A stretch of DNA of 64,000 nt from Paramoeba atlantica (GCA_977017575.1 CDRNVI010000020.1:372001-436000), one strand, 5' to 3'; shown: positions 1 to 51,319, counted from the first letter of the stretch. Translations and numbers: made by a program. Notes: a model not told the origin generated them from the sequence alone.

Positions 1-287
1 AAAATGATTTTTGAACTTTTTCTCAGTAATTTTGAACCTAAATACTGACCCCTTCCAAAAGTCCGAACTTAATAGTTGTCATTCGAATTTGAATGACAGG
101 TGTGAAAATCAAAAAACGACTGAAATTTATTCCTAAAAAAACTAATGATAAAAACTAACGGTAAAAAGCAATGAGTTTCTTGCTTTATTTCTCTCCTACC
201 TCGCCAGTATCTTAAATTGTTTACATCGTAATAGATGGCTTTAGCCAGCAACGCAATATTCGGTCGAGAGAAAAAATTCTATATACC

Positions 288-409
288 GTCCCCCCCTATT
301 TAGTGTTTGGTAGAATTGGGGAAAAACCAACACTAAGTAGGGGAGGGAAAAAAAATGGCGCAGTTTCGTCAATGTCTACGAAGCAGAAAAAACACTAAAT
401 AGGGGGACA
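288..409. mobile_element. Short MITE-like inverted-repeat element (GTCCCCCCCTATTTAGTGTT ... AACACTAAATAGGGGGAC)
   Basis: Inverted ends seen directly; same terminal motif as the element at 2409-3697. Confidence 0.5.
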
Positions 410-940
410 AGGTACTAAATAGTAAATAGAGGGTGATTAAATATTATTTAATACGTGTGTCATATTCTTGTCACATTCTTATCTACATGATTACATCAGT
501 TGAGCTCGGAATTTGTTTCCGTGCGCTCGACTTAAAGTTACCCGTCAAAGTTATCTTGTACGTGCACGGAGTGAGGCAACGAGACGAAACAACTTTCTTC
601 AGGTGTTGATGTCTCTGAAGCTTATTTTTAAGTTTCACACGCACTCCGAGGAAAGTCCCTCTGCTCGTTTACCGGTAGCAAGTACCGCTCGGAGTTCACG
701 CACTCCGATGCCTAGGCGGAGGTGATTTGTTTGCCTCTCCTGGGGAGAGCAAGTGTGCCCCATACGAGATATCTCGTTTGGACTGCTTATAGTAATGTAC
801 GCGTTACATACAAAAGAGGGCTTATATCAATAAGATACATGTTGGGGACTTTTGATGATAACTTTTAAAAAACGATATAAAAGTACATGTACATAAAGAG
901 GGGGTTCATCTATTATTAACAATCACCTATTACTAACAAT

Positions 941-1275
941 GGTATTGCGGTGGTTGTATAAATACCGCTCTACCCTCGATTTTTGACGAAAAAATAAGAG
1001 AAACACAGTAATATGATAGAAGAAAAAAATATAAAAGGGGGCTCCGGTGGTCCAAAATTGAAAAAAAGAATTGAAAAAATTGGGGGGTCCATGGGGGGGG
1101 TCTAGGGGGGGCATACCGCACGAAATGTTTTTTGAAAAAAATATTTTTCGAAAAAAAACCGCAGAAGCGGTAGCCGGGGTCTTGGCGCGCATTTTTCACT
1201 CCCCTACCCGGGGGTGACCCCCCCGCATATCCGCAGGACGGGTCCGCCAAGTTCGGATTTTTTCATAAAAAAAAT
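941..1275. repeat. Dispersed repeat family X (non-coding, probable DNA transposon end)
   Basis: Closely matches 44702-45050 (GCGGTGGTTGTATAA...GGTCCAAAATTGAAAA...CCGCAGGACGGGTCCGCCAAGTTCGGATTTTT) and partly 31773-31990. Confidence 0.7.
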
Positions 1276-1321
1276 ATTAAAGAAATTATATTATATTTTA
1301 TATTATACTTTTCAGTCCCTA

Positions 1322-2032
1322 ATGACGTTATCCGTAATGGCTTTTTCTGGTGACTCGAATATAATTGGCTTCCGTACGATGTTAGGTGCAGCCGACACTT
1401 CTACTTCCAGAGCGGGGAAGGTACGAGGGCAATATCTTCCTCCTGAGGTTGAACTTTCACGTTTCGTCCGCTTCGTTCAAAACCCTCATCCTACGTGGAA
1501 GGCAAACAAATCTATTAAGGAATGGGTCGGAGTGCAGACTACAGACGCAGGATTTGAAATACTTTGGGGTGGCTTCGAACTAAGGGGTCGGGTTGATTGG
1601 TCCCATCTTCCGCTCTCAACCGTCAAACTATATATTGGCAAAGGTATCCGTCGAGGAAAATTGCGAGACAATCGACTCCAGGACATGATTGATTTTTCTG
1701 TACTCCCGCATGAGTTAAAAGAGTTTTCTGTTGAGTCTGATCTTAGAGGGGATTTCTTTGGAGCACTGGATTTTACTCGGCTGCCCCCAAAACTGTACGG
1801 TCTCAACATAGAACACAATCGGTTTGATGGGATCATTGATCTTACGCAACTTCCTCCAAATATTGAGTACGCTTGGCTAGCATACAATTTCTTTTCTGGT
1901 AGAGTCAACTTTTCTATGCTTCCACGGAGCCTTAATGTCTTGAGCTTGAGTAGAAATACTCTATTCTACAGTAGTAGGCCTAAATGCGTTGAGATTTATA
2001 ACGATGTAAATCCCTATCATGCTAATTTTTAG
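1322..2032 (+). CDS. Leucine-rich repeat protein (KVRG-family LRR)
   Basis: RAGKVRG..LPPE N-terminal motif, W..K..W.GV cap, repeated LDFTRLPP/IDLTQLPP + LxxLxLxxNxFxG units; start codon uncertain. Confidence 0.8.
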   Translation: MTLSVMAFSGDSNIIGFRTMLGAADTSTSRAGKVRGQYLPPEVELSRFVRFVQNPHPTWKANKSIKEWVGVQTTDAGFEILWGGFELRGRVDWSHLPLSTVKLYIGKGIRRGKLRDNRLQDMIDFSVLPHELKEFSVESDLRGDFFGALDFTRLPPKLYGLNIEHNRFDGIIDLTQLPPNIEYAWLAYNFFSGRVNFSMLPRSLNVLSLSRNTLFYSSRPKCVEIYNDVNPYHANF

Positions 2033-2149
2033 TATGAGCATGAAAGCATGCGTATTTTATTCCAAATATTAATTTTGAAATAGTATAATTTATTATCCCA
2101 ATTCCAATTTTTTTATTATCCTAATTCCAAACTTTTTTCGGAGTCTCAA

Positions 2150-2347
2150 CTGAAATACAACCACCTGTGGCATACGCAAAAGCATAATTATCTCGAAGCA
2201 TATCTATTTGCCCCAGATATTGGGGCACGAGGAAGTCTCCAAGACTCGGCGAGTAAATTGGACATGCTCTTCTGCGAGGACACAGAGCTTGCGAAAGAGT
2301 GTCGCCAACACATGGTGACGAGGGCCTTTAGGAGGAGTTTTACTATA
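2150..2347 (+). mobile_element. Fragment of RLE non-LTR retrotransposon family B (endonuclease C-terminus)
   Basis: Nucleotide match to reverse complement of ~30370-30570 (encodes IGARGSLQDSASKLDMLFCE.T.LAKECRQH.VTRAFR.SFT). Confidence 0.8.
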
Positions 2348-4422
2348 CAGAGGGGGTCACGAAAACGGTGTGGGGTATAAAATTTGTGCCGTGCGAGCTT
2401 TTGACGTACTGTCCCCCCCTATTTACTATTGAGTGCTCAACCCCCCCTATTTAGTGTTGAATTTTGGGTTCTGTGCGTATAGGCGCCGCGAAGCGGCGCT
2501 TAATTCGTTTTTTCCAAACACTTTTTTTCTTATCTTTGCTTGTCATTTGTGATTGTTCACCTATTTCTACTGATTTACTTTAATCATTCATGGTGATATT
2601 TGCAATCAACAAAAAAGCAGGACTCGTAGCTCTATAAACGTTGGTCCCATTTTTGGTGAGCGGGTTGTATTCATTCTTCGCTTGTTTGGTTCTCCTTTAT
2701 ATGTACTTTGCTTGTCAGACCTAGCCTTTATAGCTGTATACCCCTTTGCAAGATGTCCACCCACAGGCCTTTATACTTAGTATACTAATGCCCCACAGAG
2801 TTTATAAAGCTGTATCCCCAACCCAGTGAAATAATACTAAACGGGGGTCCCGTTTATCAGTTATTGGCAAGGAAAAGGGGCCCTGATGGCTGACCGTATT
2901 CTAGATAGAACATTCACAAGAAGTGTTTGAAAACAGGGTACTGAAATAGGCCTGTTCGATCGCTGTACGGTGTGGTGCGTTGTATGCGTTCTTGAAATCG
3001 ATGGGAAGAATCGTGTTTCCCGCTTCATATTCTAAAATCAGCTCATGAACGATTGATTTACAGGCGCTCTTTTGTAAAATACCGCGTTGAAGCGGCTGGA
3101 AAAGAGATTTCAGTGCATCTCAAATCTCTTGCCGAATTTCGCCGTCCGAATTTCAATTCTGATTTCCTCTTTTTGCGGCATGCAAGATTTTATCTACTAT
3201 TGCTATTTAGCATGCCTGTGACCTGGTACCACACCGGGGGGGTATGGTATCGTGACCCATGGCCGATAGCATACCCTCCGCTGGTTCTTCAGGCAGACAA
3301 CATATGATATCGACTTCTTGTTCGAGGTGGTCCACGTAGATCATAACCCTACAGAGCATTATTTATCTGTTTTCTGTACTATTTATCGCGTTTTTTCATT
3401 TCTATGACTTTTTGTTGGTGATATTATTAACATCCACTACTAACTTATGCTGGTAATCACTTTTTTACAAATTTATCCCAACAACTTACCATACCTGTGA
3501 CCTGCTACCATATGTATGATCTCGTACCATACCGGGGGGTATAGTAAACCGGGCACTCCTTTACAATCGTGATTTTGAAAACAATACGGCGCGAAGCGGC
3601 GCGTTTTTTTTTTTTTTGAGGGGAGGAGACTTCTTACCCCCCCTATTTAGTGTTGGATTTTGCCGAATTTCACTCCACACTAAATAGGGGGGGACAGTAA
3701 TTCAACAGATCTCGAAATTTTAAGACTAGGTGCGTTATAATTACTTAGGCATACATGTTTAGGCATACATAAGGTTGGGTGATAATGGTGAGTCGGTAAA
3801 AAACAGTCTTTTTTTGCATATTTGGATTTGCTCACTATTTATTTATTGATCCCCCATTTTTCTCAAATAAGTCTGATTCGGGACGGGAAGCTTGTCAAAG
3901 TATTATTATACGATGCTTTTATATCAGATAATAGATAATCAAGCGCTTTTGGAATTGCAGCTTGCAGTTCCTTACGGTTTGTGGGGCGGAGAGTAAATTT
4001 TATGTGTGGTCCATCATGCTCCAAAAATTTGAATTAAATTTAAATCCGGCGACTTGGCAGGCCAATCCGGAATGCTAATACTCATATCTCTCCGATACGT
4101 CGAGCATGATTATGGCCCGGAGCGTTATCCATGATCACTGTAGCCGCTGGTTTCCGTTTTAACCAGTTATAGAAACCATTTTGTTTTTATTCATAGTTTG
4201 ATGCGCTAAAATGATACAAAATGATAAAAATCTGATTTTTGCAGAATTTTCCGGTAAAATTTGCAATAAATTTTTCTCATGACGTCATACCAGCTTCAGA
4301 GGGGGCAACAATGGTGCTAGTAGTCTTAAAAATTCGAGATCTTTTGAATGCCAAAGGAATTACGTCAAGAGCTCGCACGGTACAAATTTTATACCCCGCA
4401 CCGTTTTCGTGACCCCCCACTG
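2348..4422. mobile_element. Non-autonomous Tc1/mariner-type element with >=61-bp TIRs
   Basis: 2348-2408 (CAGAGGGGGTCACGAAAACGGTG...GACGTA) is the near-perfect reverse complement of 4361-4422. Preceded by TA, followed by CA. Splits a family-B retroelement. Confidence 0.8.
2409..3697. mobile_element. Nested TA-flanked TIR element (CTGTCCCCCCCTATTT ... AAATAGGGGGGGACAG)
   Basis: TA at 2407-2408 and 3698-3699, inverted termini, subterminal CCCCCTATTTAGTGTTG repeats, no ORF recognised. Confidence 0.8.
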
Positions 4423-24747: not shown

Positions 24748-25360
24748 GTGGACGATGTCCACGTTCGTCGCGGAAAGGTCAGTGCAGCGCTGCTTCCTCA
24801 GGACGAGCAAATGGAGCGTCTCGTACATCGCGTTGAGAACCCCCACTCGAGCTGGGTGCTCTTACGTTTCACATGGTGTGGGCGTGAGCCCGTCTCGGAG
24901 TGTACCTGGGAGGGGTTTCGATGTGACCCCCAGGGAAGGCTGCGCGCGGTTGTCCTGCGCGACTTTTACAGAGGATACTTGGAGTTCAGGGCGCTTCCCG
25001 CAACCACGCAAATGCTCTACCTCACAAAAACATTTCTCACAGGGGGCATTCCCTGGGACACGCTTCCCGTCTCCCTGGAGGAGGTGGTGCTGTGTGATAA
25101 TCTTTTTCAAGAAGAGGTCAAGCTCGCGAGCCTTCCCCCGGCGCTGGTGCGTCTTAACATCCCGGGAAACCAATTCACCGGTCCCACCGACTTGAGTCAA
25201 CTTCCCCCTGCACTGAGAATGTTGAATTTGTCCGAGAACCGCCTCTTCGGGATGATCACGTTGGATTCTCTGCCGCAGGGTTTGGTCCACCTCTATCTGC
25301 AGAGGAATCGTTTCTCGGGGGAGTTGAACTTTTCCAAGCTTCCTTTGCGGCTGGAGCACT
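24748..25360 (+). pseudogene. LRR gene truncated by SL/retrotransposon insertion
   Basis: RRGKVSAALLPQ N-terminus and several LRR units; the frame runs into SL-like sequence after ..KLPLRLEH. Confidence 0.75.
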
Positions 25361-25362
25361 GT

Positions 25363-25415
25363 ATAAAGATACAGTTTCTTTCACTGTATAAAGATACAGT
25401 TTCTGTACCTTGTTG
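25363..25415 (+). other. Tandem spliced-leader-like fragments (partial 25363-25379; 28-mer 25388-25415)
   Basis: ATAAAGATACAGTTTCTGTACCTTGTTG carries the kinetoplastid SL core ACAGTTTCTGTAC and ends TTG; 23-bp direct repeat with 25-bp period. Confidence 0.75.
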
Positions 25416-28400
25416 TTTTTTTTTCTAAACTGTATCTCCAACATGTCCGACAATCCCACTTCTCCGCGGAATGTTGACGATGCGCTGCCTGACCTCCCTC
25501 GAGCTTCCGGCGGCGTACAGACGCAAACCCTGCACTTCGTCCACAGCAGATCACGGCCCGTTAAGATACGACGCCTCACTGATCTGCATTGGACGTATTT
25601 CCCGGACATTAAGACCGCGAGCCAATGGTCCATAGTCAGACAAAGAATTCCATCCCGACAAGGTGCGGAAGTAGCTATCACGAAACTGCTGAGTAAGTGT
25701 GCATCAGCACACGATCTCGTAGCTGAACACACCACCTTTGAGGAGCTCGTGGAGCATAACGCGTGCGACTATATAAAGGTTACGAGGAATGAACACCCCT
25801 ACACCATCTCCCTGCACCCAAACTGGGTCTCGATGCACACCGACCCTGCCCTCAGCCTGCGAGACAAGTATTCCACCCCAAGCACGCTAAATAAGGCAGC
25901 CCTGAAGGCCATACAGGGAAGAGAAATATCGGGACTGAAGCACATAAAAATCGAGCTCATAAGAAACCAGGAAACACCAAGCACTGAAACCGCGGAATAC
26001 GAGAAGCCGCGCAGGATAGAAGAATCTCCTCATAAAATCGCTCCCCCACGAACGCCAAAGCCCCAGAAGGGTAAAACTGATCAACACAAGGGACCATGCA
26101 AGCACCGCTGCTTGAGCAAACTCTCCTGTGCTCACAAGTGCTGTAAAATCTATGGACCGCTGCCGAGTGAGGACGCTACATATTGCTCATCAGAAGGAGC
26201 ACTGCCACCTGAGATCGTCCCAGAAGGAACCGCAAATAACACCAACCCAGGAGATCCAAGTAAATATACGCCGGAAAGCACCTCTTCGGAACCTGCGACA
26301 CATACAAAATGCAACACACATGCGTCGAACGGTCACCGCAAACCTACCGTACATGATGAACCTTCCGCCCCGCATCCATGTCGTCATTCCTGCAAGAACA
26401 AAGCTACGTGCGGACATCTATGTTGTAAACGAGGCATTAAATCTTCGCATCTGGACTTTCCAATTTCCGCGACTTCCACAAATGAAAATCTACAAACGAA
26501 GCTATGCAACGCAATATCACGGGAGGGCGCTCACACAACTTTAGAACGCGGGTTAAACCCGGCAACACAACCTCCACCTGGTGTCCAAATGGTCCCACCT
26601 GCCGAGGGAACCCAAACAGAGGGGGCCGACGTCAACCAGAACTCCGTAACACCAAACCTCAACGACAACGATAGTGATTTCCTACGGAAAGCTGCTAAAT
26701 TGGCTGGTTGGGCCATGCGTAACGTTATAAACCTCTACCGCCTTCCCAATACTAGCATCAACGGACCAACAAACGGGAACCAACATACTGTGCAAATCAC
26801 GGATGCGACGTGCACTGACAACAAAGATAGCACTATGCACAACCCTGCGCCACTCCCTGACGCGACGCCTAGCAGTGCAGCGCATTACCCACAGAACACC
26901 GTACACATGGAACCATGTCGTCACCGATACTCGGCCAAGCTACGCTGTCTACATAAATGCTGTAAGATATATGGACCGCTTAGGTACAATGAGCCCCTCA
27001 TCCGACCTTCTCCTCTTCCTCCTCCTTCGCACACTACGGAACTTCGAGTTCCATCATGGGATGAAACCAGCGAAAGGGAGCGCCTCCATCTGCTTGAACA
27101 ACACAAAACCATAACAGGAGGAAAAATGTGCCTAAAGCTTAACGACGATCAATGGAAGGCGGTTGAAAACAAGGCATACGATGCATGCCGAAGGCTGCAA
27201 TATCCAATAGTAGACACCCCGGAAATCGCAGTGAAAAACGCAGAACTCCTGGGTGCCTCTCTGGCAGTGGCGGCATACGAAATTGCACAAGAGATTAACC
27301 CCACTAAAGGTTTCCTCACGCGATCGAAACGCGGACACGCCCGATTCAAGCACCGGACACTTTCGTCTGAAAATGCAGCCCACGAAATGACGAAACACAT
27401 ACGCAACCAAAAGAAATCACTACGCTACACACACGGAACGGAACGCCAAGAGCTCCGTCGCTGCATTAAGGAAAGTGAGAAGCTAGAGAAAACATACACA
27501 GAAGAGGCCAAAGCACATAGGAAACAGCTAGAAAGACAATGGGCCCATAGCAGATTCACGCGGAACCCGTGGACAGCAGCATCCGAGGCCTTGGACCGCC
27601 CCTCGACCTCCGCCACCGCCGAATATCCTGAATGCGATTTACCTACGATAGAAAAATATTTCACAGAAAGCACAGCACCTCCCGCCGAAGAGCATCGCCT
27701 GCCGCCGAACAACGTACTTGGTCCTCTACCCATCAACGAAATGGAATGGTCTCCACTGACCGCGCAAGATGTCGCAGACGCGCTCAGCAGCAAAAGAAGC
27801 GCAAGCGCGCCAGGGCGTGATACGATTACAAACGCACTTCTAAAACAATGCAAATACCTGTACCCCCGTATAGCGAACACGTTTAATGATCTTCTGCGCT
27901 ACGGCGTCTGCCCGCCATGCTGGTCCTCCGCCGTAGTTAAACTCATTCACAAAAGAGGCCAAAAACACATCCCGAAAAACTGGAGGCCTATCTCCCTGAC
28001 TAGCGCTCTAGGCAAACTTTTCAATAGCATGATCGGACACCAAATTTTGACGCATACCGTGTCCTCCGGCCTCCTAGATACAAGCGTTCAAAAAGGCTTT
28101 CTTCCGAAGATGAGTGGCACACTGGAACACACGCAAGCTCTCTCCGAAATACTACAATACTACCGCCGAAACAAAAGGCAATATTGTCTCACGCAGTTTG
28201 ATCTCAGCAATGCATTCGGCTCGGTCCCCCATAACATCATCTTCGAGGCACTGCGATGGGCAAACGTCTCGCCACAAATCGTGTCCTACGTTGAAAGCAT
28301 GTATTCACATGCGGAAATGCGTATTAAGTGTGTCGAAGGTTTGTCACGTGCTATACCGATACACAGAGGCGTACTACAAGGTGATACCCTGTCGCCCATA

Positions 28401-28867
28401 ATTTTCAACTTAGTGATGGAAACTGTACTACGATACCTCAAGCAATCGTGCCCCCGGTATGGCCTTGACTACCCAGATACTCCAAGGCATTTCCTGAAAG
28501 CCCACGTTGACGACCTGACGATACTGACTAGCAGCGATACCGACATGCAGCACGCGACCAACACACTCGAAACTGCACTGAGACGAATAGGACTCTCAAT
28601 CAACGTAGACAAGAGCCGTACACAGTGCATGTCCATGCGTGAAGGCAGTGAGCACCCGGGTTACATGACCAGGAAGCCGAGACTCAATATCGAAGGCAAA
28701 GCGATACCACATATATGTGACCGTGGAAGCACTTTTCTTGGAATGACCATAGCACCAGGAGCACAGCAAGCGAAAGAACTTTTCAAAAATCTGGATGTCA
28801 GACTAAGAACATGGCTTCGGAATGTCGACGAGAGTGCACACAGTCTCCCCGAAAAACTTTGGATCTA
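25416..28867 (+). mobile_element. RLE-type non-LTR retrotransposon family A, 5' part (3'-truncated)
   Basis: 27-nt UTR, then an ORF with RT domains; 28295-28867 is nearly identical to 39720-40292. Confidence 0.9.
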
Positions 28868-28868
28868 G
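25443..28868 (+). CDS. Retrotransposon ORF: three Cys/His motifs + reverse transcriptase (truncated before Zn knuckle/RLE)
   Basis: SAPGRD, WRPISL, QKGFLP.MSG.LEH, DLSNAFGSVPH, GVLQGDTLSP..F, HVDD (YVDD in second copy); stop created at the junction with the SL fragment. Confidence 0.9.
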   Translation: MSDNPTSPRNVDDALPDLPRASGGVQTQTLHFVHSRSRPVKIRRLTDLHWTYFPDIKTASQWSIVRQRIPSRQGAEVAITKLLSKCASAHDLVAEHTTFEELVEHNACDYIKVTRNEHPYTISLHPNWVSMHTDPALSLRDKYSTPSTLNKAALKAIQGREISGLKHIKIELIRNQETPSTETAEYEKPRRIEESPHKIAPPRTPKPQKGKTDQHKGPCKHRCLSKLSCAHKCCKIYGPLPSEDATYCSSEGALPPEIVPEGTANNTNPGDPSKYTPESTSSEPATHTKCNTHASNGHRKPTVHDEPSAPHPCRHSCKNKATCGHLCCKRGIKSSHLDFPISATSTNENLQTKLCNAISREGAHTTLERGLNPATQPPPGVQMVPPAEGTQTEGADVNQNSVTPNLNDNDSDFLRKAAKLAGWAMRNVINLYRLPNTSINGPTNGNQHTVQITDATCTDNKDSTMHNPAPLPDATPSSAAHYPQNTVHMEPCRHRYSAKLRCLHKCCKIYGPLRYNEPLIRPSPLPPPSHTTELRVPSWDETSERERLHLLEQHKTITGGKMCLKLNDDQWKAVENKAYDACRRLQYPIVDTPEIAVKNAELLGASLAVAAYEIAQEINPTKGFLTRSKRGHARFKHRTLSSENAAHEMTKHIRNQKKSLRYTHGTERQELRRCIKESEKLEKTYTEEAKAHRKQLERQWAHSRFTRNPWTAASEALDRPSTSATAEYPECDLPTIEKYFTESTAPPAEEHRLPPNNVLGPLPINEMEWSPLTAQDVADALSSKRSASAPGRDTITNALLKQCKYLYPRIANTFNDLLRYGVCPPCWSSAVVKLIHKRGQKHIPKNWRPISLTSALGKLFNSMIGHQILTHTVSSGLLDTSVQKGFLPKMSGTLEHTQALSEILQYYRRNKRQYCLTQFDLSNAFGSVPHNIIFEALRWANVSPQIVSYVESMYSHAEMRIKCVEGLSRAIPIHRGVLQGDTLSPIIFNLVMETVLRYLKQSCPRYGLDYPDTPRHFLKAHVDDLTILTSSDTDMQHATNTLETALRRIGLSINVDKSRTQCMSMREGSEHPGYMTRKPRLNIEGKAIPHICDRGSTFLGMTIAPGAQQAKELFKNLDVRLRTWLRNVDESAHSLPEKLWI

Positions 28869-28873
28869 ATTGG

Positions 28874-29160
28874 ATAAAGATACAGTTTCTGTACCTTGTT
28901 GTACATTTTCCCTTTAGTTCATCTTTTCTTTCCCCGGCAACGGGCATAATCTTACTGTTTTATATGCCCGTTGCCGGCCGGCACTAAGGCCGAAACTGTC
29001 CCTCTTTCTCGGCGAAGTAGGGGACGCGCTTCCACCCCATCACCCCTCCCCGGCTCACTCCTTGAGTGGGTTTTCTTCCCTCCCCGGCTTTCTTCCCTTC
29101 GCGCCCTTTTCTTCCCGGGGAGCCATGCGCCATGGTGGCCTCCCTTGAGGACCACTGGGC
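28874..29160 (+). ncRNA. SL-headed structured unit (SL RNA-like gene/retrocopy or SL-derived SINE), copy 1
   Basis: Identical SL 28-mer, then a body ~80% similar to the minus-strand copy at 44010-44300; perfect 15-bp hairpin at 28934-28977. No GT directly after the SL 3' end (TTG|TAC). Confidence 0.55.
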
Positions 29161-29195
29161 GTGGCTCTGCCTCGTCTTATCGCGAGGCAGCGGTC

Positions 29196-29347
29196 GGTTG
29201 CAGTGCGCCCCTCCGGCTGCGTAAAGAGATGGTGAGTTGCCTGGACCACCTCTTCCGACTGGGACCGAGTTGGTTGCAGTGCGCCCCTCCGGCTGCGTAA
29301 AGAGAGGGCGAGTTGCCTGGACCCCCTCTACCGACAGAGTCCGAGCT
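29196..29347. repeat. Two-copy tandem repeat, 76-bp period
   Basis: GGTTGCAGTGCGCCCCTCCGGCTGCGTAAAGAGA.GG.GAGTTGCCTGGACC... at 29196 and 29272. Confidence 0.9.
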
Positions 29348-29598
29348 AAACCCCCTTGGTGCGACATCCGTCAATACGGATTGTGCCGATGATATCGGCT
29401 GTCGCATCAAGGGCTGTATCTCTGCGCCAACGAGCGCATGAACATCAAAACCAACGCACCACTTTTTTTCCTAAAAAATAATTTTCTTGTCATTTCCAGT
29501 GCACCACTTTTTCTTAAAAACTGTATTCTCATTTCCAATGCACCATCAATTATTTAAAGAAGTATTATTTTATATTATCCTTCGGATCTATACTACAA

Positions 29599-29934
29599 AT
29601 GCGCCATTATTCAAGACTCAGTCATTACGATCGTAATCGTATTCAATCACTCTTTACATCTGGCGAGAGTCGGCGAATCATAGCTCGCATAATTGGCAAA
29701 AGTCACAGCACTGTTTGTCGCGAGTTGGCGCGTAATGCAAGAAGGGGTCAGCGCTATGAGGGGAAGAGGGCACAGCGCATTTCGAAAAGACGCCTCTCGT
29801 GTAAAAAGGTCAAGCCTCACAAGATACAAGGCCTTTTGGAAGAGGAAGTCAGCTCTCGACTTCAAAAGAAGCACAGCCCGGAACAGATTGCAAATACGAT
29901 CCGTAGCTGTCGTACCGCCTCGACTTCTACCATA
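29599..29934 (+). mobile_element. IS30-like transposase N-terminal (HTH) fragment
   Basis: Y..LS..DR..I..L...G.S.R.IA..IG+S.STV.REL.RN ... SPEQIA, the IS30 HTH pattern; cut at a TA by a Tc1-like end. Confidence 0.7.
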
Positions 29935-30205
29935 CAGGGGTGCAAATCAGATGCTGGGGGGGGGGTCTAAAATTAGCAATGTTTGCGCAATTTTGGAAAA
30001 TAATAGCGCATTCGAGAGCTCTCGCAGAGATCTATGTTTTGGCGCTATTATCACGTTAAAAGAAAACAAATTTGAAAAAGATATTTTTTTAAAGGTTTTT
30101 TACCCACCTAAAAGTTGCAGATTTTTCAATTTTTGCAGTTTTTTCCGTGTTTTTTTTTGTTTTTCAGCTCACTATTATGCCGCAAAAGCGATCCCTCTCT
30201 AAGGA
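29935..30205 (+). mobile_element. Left end of Tc1/IS630-like element (relative of 60724-62670)
   Basis: TA|CAGGGGTGC terminus, GGGGTCTAAAATT...GGAAAATAATAGCGCATT block, ATGCCGCAAAAGCG start like 60921. Confidence 0.6.
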
Positions 30206-30206
30206 G

Positions 30207-31772
30207 GAGGATTCATACAGTTATACTGTAGAGATTAAGTCAAATAGCTTGGGATCACATAACATATGATCCCGTACAAGCATACGACGTGTTTGGCTAT
30301 TCCTGTTTACTCATCCGAAATACAAACATCCATGGGGTTCCAGTTTGCGCGGTCCCGATTTTGGTATATAGTGAAACTCCCCCTAAATGCTCTCGTCACC
30401 AAGTGTTGGCGACACTCCTTGGCAAGCTTTGTTTCCTCGCAGAAGAGCATATCTAATTTACTCGCCGAGTCTTGGAGACTTCCGCGAGCCCCAATCTCTA
30501 GGGCGAATAGGTATGTTTCGGGATGATTTTCTTTTCGCGTATGCCACAGGTGGTGGTATTTCAGCATTTTCCGCTCGTGCGCGGCCTGCATATTCTCCTC
30601 CCATGGGCAAGTTAGTTCAATAATGAACTCTTTCCCGTCCCTTAGCTTTACCCACCCGTCCGGACGCAGCATACCGTCATTGTCGGCTAGCCACGTTGGA
30701 GGGCGTCGCATGCCAGGTAGGTCGAAATGAGAGAGAGCTGTATGGGGGGACTCGCTTACATGGTAAGCTAGGGCCCGTAAGATGAAGTCGTGTCTGAAAG
30801 TGTAACGCCCTTGATCTAGAGCAACTCAGCATCCCGCGAGAATGTGCCTTGGGGTTTGTACCTCTGTCTTGCATAGCGGGCATTTGATGTCTGTGTGGGT
30901 TGATATGCCCCAGCGGTGAATTGCGGCCCTGGTAGGTAGCGGGGCCTGTGTGAGGACAGAGGAGACAAATCGCGTCAGGTGCGTCGACCTGATGTTTTTC
31001 GAACCTGAAGTCTTTCGCCACGCTTTCCTCCGATGCATCGTTGAACCATCTGGCAGCGATAGGTGCTCTCCGTTATACCGCTTGTGTAAGATGCGCCTCA
31101 TGCTCGGTATTGATTTTACGGCGCATTTCGTTAGAGTCTCCTATTAGGTGGCACAGGTCGGCTGCCGGGCGCACATGCCCGCGTGAACGCTGCCTTTTCT
31201 CGTTCTCAATTTTAATTCGCAATGCGTGCTGCACCGCCGGATCCCGAGAAGCATTCATTTGATTTAGGTTTTGGGCTGTGCAGTGTAGCCACAATTTGGA
31301 CAGGCTCATGAGGGCCCAACCACGTTCAGAGTAAAGGAGCTCACTCGTTGAGGCTTTAGCGAGATTTAGCCACTTTCGGATGTGCCGGGTCGCTAGTTTC
31401 TGCTGTCGAAGCATATGAGTAAAAGAAAGTCCGGGGTTGATTGTTAGTACATAGCGCAAGCGAGCAATGATGACGTGATTGTATATCCAAAGCTTAGCGG
31501 ATGGGTCGTGAGCGCTCTCAGAGATTCTGCTCAACCAACCTGATAGTTTCGCCTTAACAGTTTGAAAGGTAATTTTGCCTTGTTGTGCGCCGGGTGCCAG
31601 TGTCATGCCCAAAAACATACTTCCTTTATCGCATATGTGAGGAATAGGCGTGCCTTTGGCCATAATCTGCGGGCGTCTGGTCATATATCCACTGCCTGTT
31701 GCCACGGACATGTGCTGAACTCTGCATTTCCCAATGTTCAGTGTCAGCCCCAATCTCGAAAGTGCTGTTGCT
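30207..31772 (-). mobile_element. RLE-type non-LTR retrotransposon family B, 5'-truncated and degenerate
   Basis: RT thumb (GLTLNIGKC..KLWIYN), CPLC..Q TPRHILAGC*, QGRYTFRHD, LRPDG..EFIIELTCPWEEN...HERK..KY; one frameshift and one in-frame TGA. Confidence 0.85.
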
Positions 31773-32310
31773 CCAGTGGTCCAAAATTGAAAAAAAAAAA
31801 TGAATAAAATGGGGGGTCCAGGGGGGGGCATACGTCAAGAAATTTTTTTTCGAATTTTTTGCTTTTCAAAATCGAGCGCAGGGAAGTGGTAGAGTAGGCC
31901 GCGGCGATAATTCCCCCCCCCCTGGTACGCGCAGGAGGGGTCCGACAAGGTCAAAATTTCCGAAAGTTTTGGGGTGACCAAAAAAAAGTAAAAATATTAT
32001 TTTTCCAAAATCTACTCCTAAAACGTATTTTAAGAGTTTGGGACCTCAGCTACCATTCTGCGACGTTTTTTTCGACAGATTCGCCTTCTACCCCTACTGG
32101 TAAGGCATCTAAAACGGTCCAAATTCGGGTTGAAATTTTGCAATTTTCGCCGAAAAATCCAGCTTTTTCACCCAAAAAAATAGATTATTCATGATCTTTT
32201 ACCAATTTTTCTTTTTTAGGTTCGCAGTGGTAGTTTTCAACGCGAAGCGCGCAGCATTAGTGACTTCTATGTTGAAAACAACCACCGCGTTTAACGAAGA
32301 GCCTAAAAAA
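31773..32310. repeat. Diverged copy of repeat family X ending in a partial palindromic MITE
   Basis: Similar to 44825-45300 and to 45490-45571. Confidence 0.55.
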
Positions 32311-33551
32311 TGAGTAGCTAATTGTGTCTATTTGTTTTCCTTGAATGTACGTGCCTTGCGGCGATTAAACCAGTACGCAGTAAACTAGTACATTTTTTCG
32401 TTTTGTTTTTTTGTCTATGTGACTCACTCTGTTGCTTCATTTTGGATTTCATTTCACTCCTGGTCATTTTTTCATAAGTTTCCGCACCTTTTTTCCCCTT
32501 TCTAGGACATTTTCCGATTCTTGTCCATCGTGCGTTGGGTGCATCGCCAATATTCTGGGAATTCACTTTCCTTCACACCTTGAAGCTCTGCACGATTCGA
32601 AACATTGAAAAACGAAAGCCCTTTTTCACGATTCTTCGCAATCAGGACTCACGCTTCTATAAGAACCGTGTAGTCCAAAGGAACTTCGCACAATACCCGG
32701 GAAACACCACTGATAGGCGGGAACACCATTGATAGATTTTCCAATAGCGACTTTCGTTTTGTCACCCATGACACACAGAGCGTCATTACTCCCTCTTCCA
32801 AACGATCCCTAATTTCTTTTGGAGGGTGGGAATTAAACTTCTCTAGCGAGACCTTAAGAGAAATCGTACATGGGCGCTTCAGCACACGTTTAATGCCGTG
32901 CACAACCCACTTACGCAGGCGTTCATACAGGTCTGATGTTGGATCCATGTATGGATCATCCGATTCATCAGGCGGAGGTAAGTCCATGGAAGGCAAAGAA
33001 ATACGGCAAAAAGAAGAATTTAGTTAGTAAAATGTCGAGTATTATTGATTGTTAGACGCTTTTCCAAGCACAATGTATTATTAACTTGTATTACATGCCG
33101 AAACCCTCGTTTAAGTCCAGCAGAATAACAATTCCAGTAACATGATTTCTGTATCTTCCCATTGAAGCAAAAAATATTAAGGAACTAAGGAGGAAAATTT
33201 TGACGAAAGATCCTAGGCATATCCACCCGGAGTCACCCCTCTTACTTACAACAACTCCCCTTTTTGCAATACAAAACTTCACACGTCAAGCCTTGGTGAG
33301 TAGGCTATCAAAATTCTTAGGATATTCGCACCGCAAAACCTTTCTAGGACGTTGCTCAACTTCCTGGATGTCTTGTTCACCTCTTTGAGGCTCAGCATCT
33401 CAAACGACTCACTCGTCTTGTGATATTGGCGAATAAGGCCATTTGAATTTTCCACCCCTCACGTAGTGACAGGTAACCAGGGGGGTACAGTAATTCATTA
33501 TGATTATTTCCGGGTCAGGAGTTTTTATTATTTGATTTTATCTCATTTTTG

Positions 33552-39106: not shown

Positions 39107-41790
39107 ATGAGTACGAATATGATATCCTTAGTGTATTATCTGTGTTGCACAGCTGATGTGTCAAATGTCGATGCAACACGTAGACTTCCCAGTAGGGTGC
39201 GAGGAACGAATAACCACAAGAATATGAGCTCGCACGATTTGCCGCTGATATTGAGAACCCAGACCCATCGTGGAATACATCAACGCCAGCATGTGAGTGG
39301 AAAGGTGTGGATTGTGATGGACAACAAGTAACGAACATTATTTGGGAAACATTCGGCATATTTGGGAGTAATCGACTGAAAGGATCACTGCAATGGCGTT
39401 ACACATTACGCACGTTACACAAATTTAAAGCATCTTGCAACGATCTTACGGGAAAAGTACTGTTCGATATGTTGCCGGCTGAACTTGATGAGTTTGCCAT
39501 AAACTGTAACCAATTTTCAGGCTCTTTGGAATTCCACCATTTACCACAAAACATGGAGGAACTTATCCTGTGTAACAACTTTTTTCAGGGGAATATAGAT
39601 TTAACCTGCCTGGGGAATCATATTTTCCTCTTATTAATGTCGGACACCAATTTATCCGGTGAAATCGACCTCACCAGTCTACCGCGATCTATGATTAACA
39701 TAGATGAGAACATACATAGAAGCATGTATTCACATGCGGAAATGCGTATTAAGTGTGTCGAAGGTTTGTCACGTGCTATACCGATACACAGAGGCGTACT
39801 ACAAGGTGATACCCTGTCGCCCATAATTTTCAACTTAGTGATGGAAACTGTACTACGATACCTCAAGCAATCGTGCCCCCGGTATGGCCTTGACTACCCA
39901 GATACTCCAAGGCATTTCCTGAAAGCCTACGTTGACGACCTGACGATACTGACTAGCAGCGATACCGACATGCAGCACGCGACCAACACACTCGAAACTG
40001 CACTGAGACGAATAGGACTCTCAATCAACGTAGACAAGAGCCGTACACAGTGCATGTCCATGCGTGAAGGCAGTGAGCACCCGGGGTACATGACCAGGAA
40101 GCCGAGACTCAGTATCGAAGGCAAAGCGATACCACATATATGTGACCGTGGAAGCACTTTTCTTGGAATGACCATAGCACCAGGAGCACAGCAAGCGAAA
40201 GAACTTTTCAAAAAGCTGGATGTCAGACTAAGAACATGGCTTCGGAATGTCGACGAGAGTGCACACAGTCTCCCCGAAAAACTTTGGATCTACAACAGAG
40301 CGATCGTATCCCGTCTGCGCTACGCCCTCACCGTTCACCCGTGTGTCACTTTCAACTTTGTATTGCGATTGCAGAAAAGAATTACACGTCACCTTAAGAA
40401 ATGGATCAATGCAGCATCCACGACTTGCACCGAAATTCTTTATACTGAACGAGGGTGGAACCTTAAAAGTTTATCCAAGCTGTGGTCCGAATGCTCTATC
40501 CTAGCCTTAACACAGATGCACAAGTGGCGGGACCCATCGATACAGGCGGCACTACGAGCCCGAATCAAGCAAGAAGAAGAAAAACGATCCTCTGGTTATA
40601 TTCGTCCAAGCGCTGACGCCATTCAACACCTTCATGACGCGCGGAAGGCGCAACAGATAGCCCGTGATCACCATGAATCTTACGTCATAAATCAGCTTCA
40701 GAGACGGGCACCGACAGCAGCAAAATAGTGGAGCCTCCCCTCCGAGGCTGATCTCGCGAAAGAGTTCTCAGCGGCCCTGAACAACCTCAACAGTGAAAAA
40801 CTTTCTCGCTTCGCAGCTTCAGTACTAACGCTTTCACCCCTACCATCCAGAACCAATCTTCGGCTTTGGGGTCTCCGGCGTGCGAGTGTAACATGTCCCA
40901 TATGTAAACTCGAACCTCAAACAACAAGGCACGTGCTCTCGGGGTGCAAAGAGTCCCTTCAGCAAGGGAGATATACCCTCCGTCATGACATGTTACTTGA
41001 AGAGCTCGGAAAACACTTGCTGCGTTCGCCGTATACCAAGAGCGTACACCTAGATATCCCCGGATTTAGGAATGCCCCGGCATGGCTCGGCACCCGTGAG
41101 GACCTTCTTCGCCCCGACGGTTTGATTACACTTAAGGATGGAAGTGAGTTCATCATTGAGCTCACTGTGCCCTGGGAAGAGAACCAGTCTCAGGCGCACG
41201 AGGGCAAATCCCGTAAATATAATGCTCTCTTCCATGAACGACGCATTAATCACCCTAGGACGACCCTTGTTGTATTCGAAGTGGGAGCCCGCGGCTCGTT
41301 ACTCACATCTTGTCGAAACCTCAATCTCCTCTTTGACGAGGACACAAAGCTTGCGGAAAAATGTCGAGAAAGTCTAATGCAGACCGCCCTTCGAGGCAGT
41401 TTCATTATCTGGCAGAACCGCGAGTCTGCCGTTTGGACAGAAGGACGGGTATAACGTCTGTAAAAGATAGGTCTGGGCAGCGTCATATGCGCCCCCCAGG
41501 CCTATCCGCATATTCTCTGCCTTATAAAGGTATGATAAATTAAACTATCATACAACAAGTTTACAGGACCACTTAATTTACAACACTTACCTTTCGAACT
41601 TGATGCTCTCGACTGTTCTAATAATCAGTTTTCCGGATTGGTGCGATTTGATAACCTTCCACCACGATTGTCATGGTTTTGCCTTGACAATAACTCGGAG
41701 CTTTACGGTAATGTCAACGATTTCACTTTACCTGATAAACTGCAAGCCCTTAGCGTAGATGGTACGAAAATAATTCCGAAAGAGAAATGA
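39107..41790 (+). pseudogene. LRR pseudogene, frameshifted near 39210 and interrupted by retrotransposon A (39706-41544)
   Basis: SRVRG..PQEYELARF split by a frameshift. Removing the insert rejoins ..LPRSMINID|LSYNKFTG.. in frame to TGA 41788-41790. Confidence 0.8.
39706..41544 (+). mobile_element. RLE-type retrotransposon family A, 5'-truncated copy with intact 3' end
   Basis: YVDD, CPIC..TTRHVLSGC, QGRYTLRHD, LRPDG...IIELTVPWEEN...K..KY. Single in-frame TAG at 40726; 14 extra nt at the 5' junction; 3' UTR hairpin GATAGGTCTGGG/CCCAGGCCTATC; no poly(A) or TSD seen. Confidence 0.9.
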
Positions 41791-44009: not shown

Positions 44010-44300
44010 ACGCGTCTAGTGGTCCTCAAGTGAGGCCACCGTGACGCCTAGCCCTCTCGGAGAGGTACGGGTCGGGAGGAAAGAATCCGAGAGGGAGAAG
44101 AATTCACTCCAGGGGAGTGAGTCGGGGAGGGGCGAAGGGATGAAGGCGCGTCCCCTTCTTCAGCGATAAAGGGGGACAGTTCCAGCCTTAGCGCCGACCG
44201 GCAACGGGCATGAAAATACAGCAAGAGTATGCCCATTGCGGGGGAAAGAAAGGATGAACTAAGGTTAAGTACCAACAAGGTACAGAAACTGTATGTTTAA
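44010..44300 (-). ncRNA. SL-headed structured unit (SL RNA-like gene), copy 2, with GT donor
   Basis: Minus strand reads TTAAACATACAGTTTCTGTACCTTGTTG|GTAC (26/28 match to the SL fragment, GT at 44272-44271), followed by the body homologous to 28902-29160. Confidence 0.6.
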
Positions 44301-51291: not shown

Positions 51292-51319
51292 ATAAAGATA
51301 TGGTTTCTGTACCTTGTTG
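51292..51319 (+). other. Spliced-leader-like 28-mer heading a short UTR and ATG 51357
   Basis: ATAAAGATATGGTTTCTGTACCTTGTTG, 26/28 match; preceded by TAACG. Confidence 0.65.

Follow-up and report, generated by a model that had tools for sequence, protein, structure and literature searches.

We have analysed a 64,000-nucleotide stretch of Paramoeba atlantica DNA (GCA_977017575.1 CDRNVI010000020.1:372001-436000; hereafter the window, with positions counted from its first letter), in which a leucine-rich repeat (LRR) gene is cut by a block of mobile sequences containing two 28-mers (25388-25415 and 28874-28901). The 28-mers are identical, as had been noticed in a sequence-only reading of the same stretch, and by chance no such pair is expected. 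Probably, mobile elements came to this LRR gene in several separate events and now lie stacked there. The left 28-mer is the ordinary head of an R2-like long interspersed nuclear element (LINE) with a restriction-like endonuclease (RLE), called A here, and the right one is the ordinary head of a short interspersed nuclear element (SINE)-like sequence, called B; both heads are copies of the 3' part of the host spliced leader (SL), and pieces of a DNA transposon, D, lie on both sides of B.

The identity of the 28-mer was settled from about 36 SL RNA genes, which stand outside the window in tandem arrays on contigs C97, C107, C74, C11, C3 and C24. In these genes AACTTTAACG is followed by the 28-mer and then by GTATGAGAAG, the longer intron reading GTATGAGAAGC..., therefore the true SL is 38 nt long and the 28-mer of the window corresponds to its nt 11-38. 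The earlier suggestion that the repeat is the 3' part of an SL was thus correct in kind, with the numbering (nt 12-39 of a 39-nt leader) to be replaced. The sequence GTATGAGAAGC... after the SL exon is the classical kinetoplastid intron start, and the intact SL genes examined run uninterrupted through the exon into GTATGAG. The 3' 20-mer of the repeat has 877 occurrences in the 45.7-Mb genome; no match to the SL string was found in the literature searched.

Element B occupies 28874-29450 (plus strand, 577 bp) and is delimited by its repeat ends, its SL head and its copies genome-wide. When the approximately 36 SL genes are subtracted from the 171 sites in the genome where the SL is followed by GTA, about 130 dispersed B copies remain. 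B is short and non-coding, its dispersed copies have fixed ends, and its tail CATGAACATCAAAA is similar to TATGAACAAACAA, the tail of an A-related LINE that is a candidate partner; these are the features of a SINE-like element, and instead of a derivation from tRNA, 5S or 7SL RNA its head is SL nt 11-38 (28874-28901). In the window copy the G preceding GTAC is deleted, and the tail ends in ...GAACATCAAAA. The claim that a structured body follows the second 28-mer was borne out by a 14-bp hairpin (its arms at 28934-28948 and 28963-28977), which is conserved and includes one compensatory pair; an Rfam scan of the window returned no family at threshold, so the B body is not an RNA of a described kind. 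A 76-nt tandem repeat at 29193-29344 (89% identity) is present in most young B copies and is therefore a trait of the family, not of this locus. The flanks of B copies are mutually unrelated; many of them are LRR genes cut at one point of the repeat, and at L043, L031 and L055 the LRR reading frame resumes past the B tail.

The position at which the SL starts is characteristic of the family. In a census of 59 non-redundant B heads, taken from the approximately 130 copies, the SL begins at nt 10-12 in 39, and the wider range of nt 8-14 takes in 51; a few heads reach nt 3. Of 31 heads of other families, many of which directly follow a poly(A) run, 21 begin at nt 1-3. The expectation that SL fragments would have non-random 5' ends tied to particular retroelement families has therefore held. 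B was also considered as a variant of the SL RNA gene with GTAC after the exon. This was rejected: only GTA is common with the intron GTATGAGAAG..., most heads are devoid of SL nt 1-10, and the flanks are unrelated. A full SL directly before an A or B body, as would mark a promoter-driven master copy, was sought as well, and only retro-type heads preceded by non-SL bases were seen.

Element A follows the left 28-mer, its head (25388-25415, plus strand), which was assigned by its match to the SL genes and by comparison with other A heads. The body at 25416-28867 (plus strand) comprises only nt 1-3452 of the element, as judged from its reverse transcriptase (RT) domain and from near-full copies, seven of which match this interval at 98-99% identity. 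Its 5' untranslated region (UTR) holds an 11-nt anti-SL motif at 25427-25437, and an uninterrupted open reading frame (ORF) of 1141 codons (25443-28865) encodes three Cys/His motifs and the RT domain (Pfam RVT_1, E=7e-31). Beyond nt 3452 every inspected A copy goes on with CAACAGAGCG..., the thumb, a CCHC motif and an RLE segment, up to the end ...AAACTATCATA, and full copies encode 1528 amino acids (two database members of the same 90% cluster). The copy of the window is without its thumb, CCHC and RLE parts, and the missing 3' part was not found elsewhere in the window. The element had been described as a 3'-truncated retrotransposon before, and this description is fully supported by the comparison. 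Among 66 homologues the nearest named relatives of A are R2-type elements, a weak alignment was obtained between its C-terminal piece and the endonuclease region of solved R2 proteins (9nl3, 9dou; E=0.004), and 5'-truncated copies starting at nt 1737 and nt 2880 reach the common 3' end. A is classified as an R2-like RLE LINE by the RVT_1 domain together with such 5'-truncated copies sharing a single 3' end.

Five further A heads were examined, with SL starts at nt 8, 9, 11, 13 and 14; four of these heads are preceded by LRR genes and one by the RT of another element. The head on C71 reads ATAAAG-ATAAAGATAC, and counted from the first ATAAAG its start would also be nt 11. The rest of the LRR gene stands directly after A copies with an intact 3' end, both in the C71 copy and in a 5'-truncated copy within the window (39720-41553, plus strand), which ends in ...AAACTATCATA and beyond which a second LRR gene resumes at once. 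Since other A heads begin with the SL and normal copies abut LRR sequence, the left 28-mer is the ordinary head of A. The 5'-truncated copy of the window has a CPICK...H...C motif and a PD...E-type segment at 40880-41454, and an in-frame TAG (40726-40728) was seen in it between the thumb and the CCHC/RLE part, where P0070 and P0072, from two other copies, give a 1528-residue protein without interruption.

The same observations decide about a first alternative, in which the two 28-mers would be a target-site duplication of SL nt 11-38 made by A inserting into an SL. For CRE1/CRE2, SLACS and CZAR the target is the SL RNA gene, which they enter between nt 11 and 12, duplicating the SL target sequence. 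A is similar to them in its order of RT, CCHC motif and restriction-like endonuclease, in its kinetoplastid-type host and in its association with the SL; furthermore, the 28-mers are identical, and the 5' end of the A head, counted as 28 nt from the exon 3' end, coincides with their nt 11/12 site. The right 28-mer, however, is the head of B with its approximately 130 dispersed copies, and therefore the duplication model falls. Against it stand also that LRR sequence and not SL follows the 3' end of other A copies, that the 3' end of A is absent here, and that the upstream flank is an LRR gene and not an SL promoter; we regard this origin of the 28-mers as having next to no likelihood. In general, A and B sit in LRR genes, microsatellites and other repeats, not in SL RNA genes, and carry the SL at the 5' end only, with no flanking duplication. 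The six A heads examined are flanked by LRR genes in five cases, by the RT of another element in one and by an SL promoter in none, and no named CRE, SLACS or CZAR protein is among the 66 homologues of A. Thus A does not have the defining feature of this group, insertion into SL genes with duplication of the SL target, though the order of its domains agrees.

The gene that received A is represented by an ORF at 24748-25362 (plus strand) with weak Pfam LRR hits, which is cut after ...LPLRLEHC, the position within the LRR unit that A and B copies commonly use for insertion. That the block interrupts an LRR gene had been recognized before; the remaining part of this gene is not present in the window after B, where the next LRR ORFs (33549, 34772) have N-termini of their own. 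Across the 5' joint (25357-25406, plus strand) a 25-bp unit stands twice in tandem, at a spacing of 25 and with one mismatch. The unit consists of CACTGT, the last 6 nt of the LRR flank, SL nt 11-27 and 2 further nt, so that a partial SL copy of 17 nt (25363-25379) is followed by TT and a second CACTGT. This partial SL had been noticed and ascribed to a separate SL-capped RNA; it is indeed there, and because it carries 6 nt of the LRR flank it is a local duplication. In an 8-mer test the flank together with a partial SL was repeated at 6 of the 59 B heads. Similar stutters are found at L058, L073, L088, L099 and L046, with four partial SLs at L073, and several further B heads, inspected by eye, duplicate the flank alone. 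Such stutters fit a switching of the polymerase between the RNA head and the target end during formation of the 5' joint, and only in this limited sense is the earlier idea of template jumping supported.

The joint between A and B is where the third element comes in. D is defined by ends of about 20 nt, which are inverted and 1391 bp apart on C9, C10, C58, C83 and C29, and with this fixed spacing and a transposase remnant it qualifies as a terminal inverted repeat (TIR) DNA transposon. In fifteen other D copies the left end reads GGCG-GATTG-TCAACA-CCAACGCACC (starting CCAACGC). In the window the order is A up to nt 3452, then GATTG (28868-28872, plus strand), one extra G (28873), B with its end ...CATCAAAA, and then CCAACGCACC, which opens the continuation of the left TIR of D with its subterminal repeats (29445-29934, plus strand; assigned from D copies elsewhere). 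The positions 29445-29450 overlap the B tail and read TCAAAA where D has TCAACA, a match at 5 of 6 nt, which strengthens the short 5-nt match on the left side. Part of an HTH_38 ORF is present in D at 29599-29970 (E=3.5e-12). Since D lies on both sides of B, B is a separate insertion with its own target site. GATTGG was considered as untemplated filler and rejected: GATTG is the left end of D, which resumes after B, plus one extra base. Short linkers had been reported at both joints, and both exist (TT/CACTGT upstream; GATTG and G at 28868-28873), the second one not being non-templated as had been assumed.

It had also been proposed that a single round of target-primed reverse transcription made the whole block by jumping serially between templates, over B RNA, untemplated bases, an A RNA fragment ending at nt 3452 and a further SL-bearing RNA. 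Template jumping is known for R2-type reverse transcriptases in general, frequent switching of the polymerase is seen in the stutters of this genome, A and B share one orientation, and in each of them the head stops at SL nt 11. Head-to-tail tandems occur as well: at L074 and L089 an A-like LINE with its 3' end intact is followed directly by a B head, and L101 is a B-B dimer. What speaks against a single event here is that the supposed untemplated bases belong to D and D continues right after B, that no LRR sequence follows B and so no single target site brackets A and B, that the partial SL upstream carries LRR flank as a local duplication, and that the A/B joint (as a 27-mer) is unique in the genome. 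Chimeras made by template switching of LINE-1 (the U6-L1 type) are similar in having two RNA-derived pieces head to tail in one orientation; they have one common target duplication and no foreign DNA at the joint, in contrast to the 5 nt of D found here, and with D at the joint and no LRR after B the locus does not have the features of a single-event template-jump chimera. We consider this origin of the block unlikely. The tandems, together with a B copy cleanly nested in antisense orientation in the RT of a LINE (L084), may reflect end-to-end jumping or repeated use of a target site in this genome. An end-to-end concatemer is not what the present locus shows.

The inverted repeat of D starts 1 nt inside the A/D joint. 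In the favoured reading, with its several separate events, this suggests that the joint was made by a transposase, either by insertion of D into A or by a deletion adjacent to the end of D. Some observations weigh against this reading. Only 5 nt of D stand to the left of B, a match with a chance of about 1 in 1000; neither the right end of D nor the remainder of A was found in the window, so that there is no matching right joint; and GGCG outside GATTG in all the other D copies leaves room for a D terminus situated further out, and the A/D joint would then mark no more than an ordinary deletion. Elsewhere the right end of D reads ...GTTGACAATG. Downstream of D the window contains a nested 273-bp repeat (29931-30203, unstranded) and the 3' part of an A-like LINE (30201-31840, minus strand), both assigned by repeat matches; the window contains no right TIR of D and no remainder of this A copy or of the cut LRR gene, and no D-like sequence is present at 31841-33540.

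These points lead to a further alternative, in which A was cut by ordinary deletion and end-joining independently of the transposase of D, B and D remaining independent insertions. The dense nested repeats and the missing right end of D are in line with it, and if GGCG belongs to a larger unit bearing D the joint may lie inside that unit. On the other hand, a breakpoint within 1 nt of the outer edge of an inverted repeat would be rare at random, and we assign to ordinary deletion a small share of the probability. D itself, a TIR element of 1391 bp, carries the GCACCA repeat four times in subterminal position, together with an HTH_38 remnant; the outer flank GGCG is common to all 15 other left ends and GGGT to all right ends, so either D targets one site or it travels inside a larger unit. 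The copy of the window (29445-30203) and copies on C54 and C56 (C56:21168-24911) are of a common D variant with the nested 273-bp repeat.

The joints were also compared with other assemblies, as the region is rich in repeats and the A/B joint could in principle be an artefact of collapsed SL-bearing repeats. Contig ctg2639l of ENA ERZ24900291 is 100% identical over 12.2 kb, all joints included, and probably comes from the same data as the assembly of the window. Logan contigs match 25319-25414 exactly and so confirm the joint of LRR, stutter and SL; among the Logan contigs listed, none spans the A/B joint at 28867-28874, which counts against the stack of events, the support here being at the level of contigs and not of reads. 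At the joint stand 6 specific bases that are not repeat sequence, the two sides do not meet inside the shared 28-mer, and the A ORF ending at this joint is recorded as a called gene. An assembly artefact is accordingly very improbable.

The history of the locus may be outlined as follows. A would have inserted at its usual point of the LRR unit, the 5' joint acquiring the 25-bp stutter. Then the left end of D would have been joined to A after nt 3452, by insertion into A or by an adjacent deletion mediated by the end of D, with loss of the last approximately 1.3 kb of A and of the remaining LRR gene from this place. Finally B, in a target-primed reverse transcription of its own, would have entered D 5 bp in from its left end. 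The order of these events, and the transposase of D as the maker of the A/D joint, are what we infer. What the sequences demonstrate directly is which SL the 28-mers come from, that both are element heads, that D flanks B on either side and that A has lost its 3' part.

Some further SL-bearing sequences were recorded during the analysis. In the SL gene array at C74:104157-121527 two successive spacings are 7.29 and 7.31 kb, as against about 2.7 kb of the neighbouring unit and about 2.6 kb on C97 and C107; the excess of about 4.6-4.7 kb is near the full length of an A-type LINE, and LINEs inserted in SL genes might account for it. L045 (C6:27086-27127, minus strand) is a retro-pseudogene of the whole SL RNA, having the SL from nt 3, the normal intron to ...GGGGCTT and a short A run. 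L001-L004 (C1:9752-25049) belong to a 5.09-kb tandem gene array; in each unit one 34-nt 5' UTR segment stands twice in direct orientation, with an SL copy (nt 2-38) in between. In the window itself an older, diverged B copy with the head TTAAACATACAG... is located at 44018-44300 (minus strand), and at 51292-51319 an SL-headed sequence (SL from about nt 5, with two mismatches) precedes a short UTR and an ATG. At L054, L023 and L112 the heads of B and of an A-related LINE are joined directly to long (GT)n microsatellites, which suggests that these are a second preferred target of the two.

The origin of the SL heads was approached from the element sequences. In the DNA copies of SL-headed elements there is no AG acceptor before the UTR, therefore trans-splicing cannot remake the same joint from a daughter copy, and some daughters hold more of the SL than the typical copy does, down to nt 3. 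Stretches complementary to the SL are present in the 5' UTRs of four R2-like LINE families and in the B body. The longest anti-SL matches, 11 nt, are in A, where SL nt 15-25 can be paired, and in the A-related L109 LINE at about 6760 (nt 7-17), with a shuffle p of about 0.001; matches of 8 nt occur in two more LINEs (L111 at about 330, L112 at about 4965) and in B (at about 28992-28999 of the window), with p of about 0.04-0.06. The fourteen other SL-headed families include 13 with anti-SL matches of only 4-7 nt and L026 with 8 nt (p 0.04). Instead of heads left over from ordinary trans-splicing, a dedicated capture can be imagined, in which the element RNA would tether an SL-bearing RNA by pairing and the RT, on completing the first strand, would jump onto this RNA, usually stopping near nt 11; we put it forward as a speculative proposal that is more likely wrong than right by a wide measure.

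Apart from the CRE group, several known systems offer points of comparison. With R2 and the non-site-specific R2-like elements A shares the single large ORF, the weak alignment with the R2 endonuclease, the R2-type named relatives, the 5'-truncated copies with one 3' end and the variable 5' joints with added or repeated bases; it differs in that it targets a coding LRR repeat, at one point, and not ribosomal DNA, and in that its copies have a host SL head and its 5' UTRs anti-SL motifs. SL copies on retro-sequences are already known, since dinoflagellate retrogenes carry relict SL copies at the 5' end (PMC5585692), and in both cases SL DNA copies at the 5' end attest reverse transcription of SL-bearing RNA. 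The dinoflagellate relicts are 5'-truncated, lie downstream of a newer SL and are on cellular genes, whereas the extra fragment described here is 3'-truncated, lies upstream and has target flank, and the carriers are retrotransposons. No report of SL-headed retrotransposons in kinetoplastids was found in the literature searched. The RHS genes of Trypanosoma brucei, hot spots of ingi and RIME, are likewise a multigene family hit at one position by LINE and SINE-like inserts; here the family is an LRR family, the LINE is of the RLE and not of the apurinic/apyrimidinic endonuclease (APE) type, and the inserts have SL heads.

As a locus, the block is an ordinary, chance stack of three elements; the concatemer as first proposed would have been a new mode of SL exploitation by a retroelement. 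New here are its resolution, the family-specific position of the SL head (nt about 11 versus nt 1-3), the recognition of junction stutters as a class and the anti-SL statistics. An R2-like LINE clade and its SINE-like partner carry an SL head that starts nearly always at nt 10-12, while other families keep nt 1-3, and elements of the A and B type enter a coding LRR repeat at one and the same point, with 5' joints that often stutter. The genome thereby holds a natural record of an R2-type enzyme finishing reverse transcription on capped, trans-spliced RNA, and the question is raised how the head is renewed in each generation. If the dedicated capture were true, acquisition of the SL would be a part of the retrotransposition mechanism of these elements.

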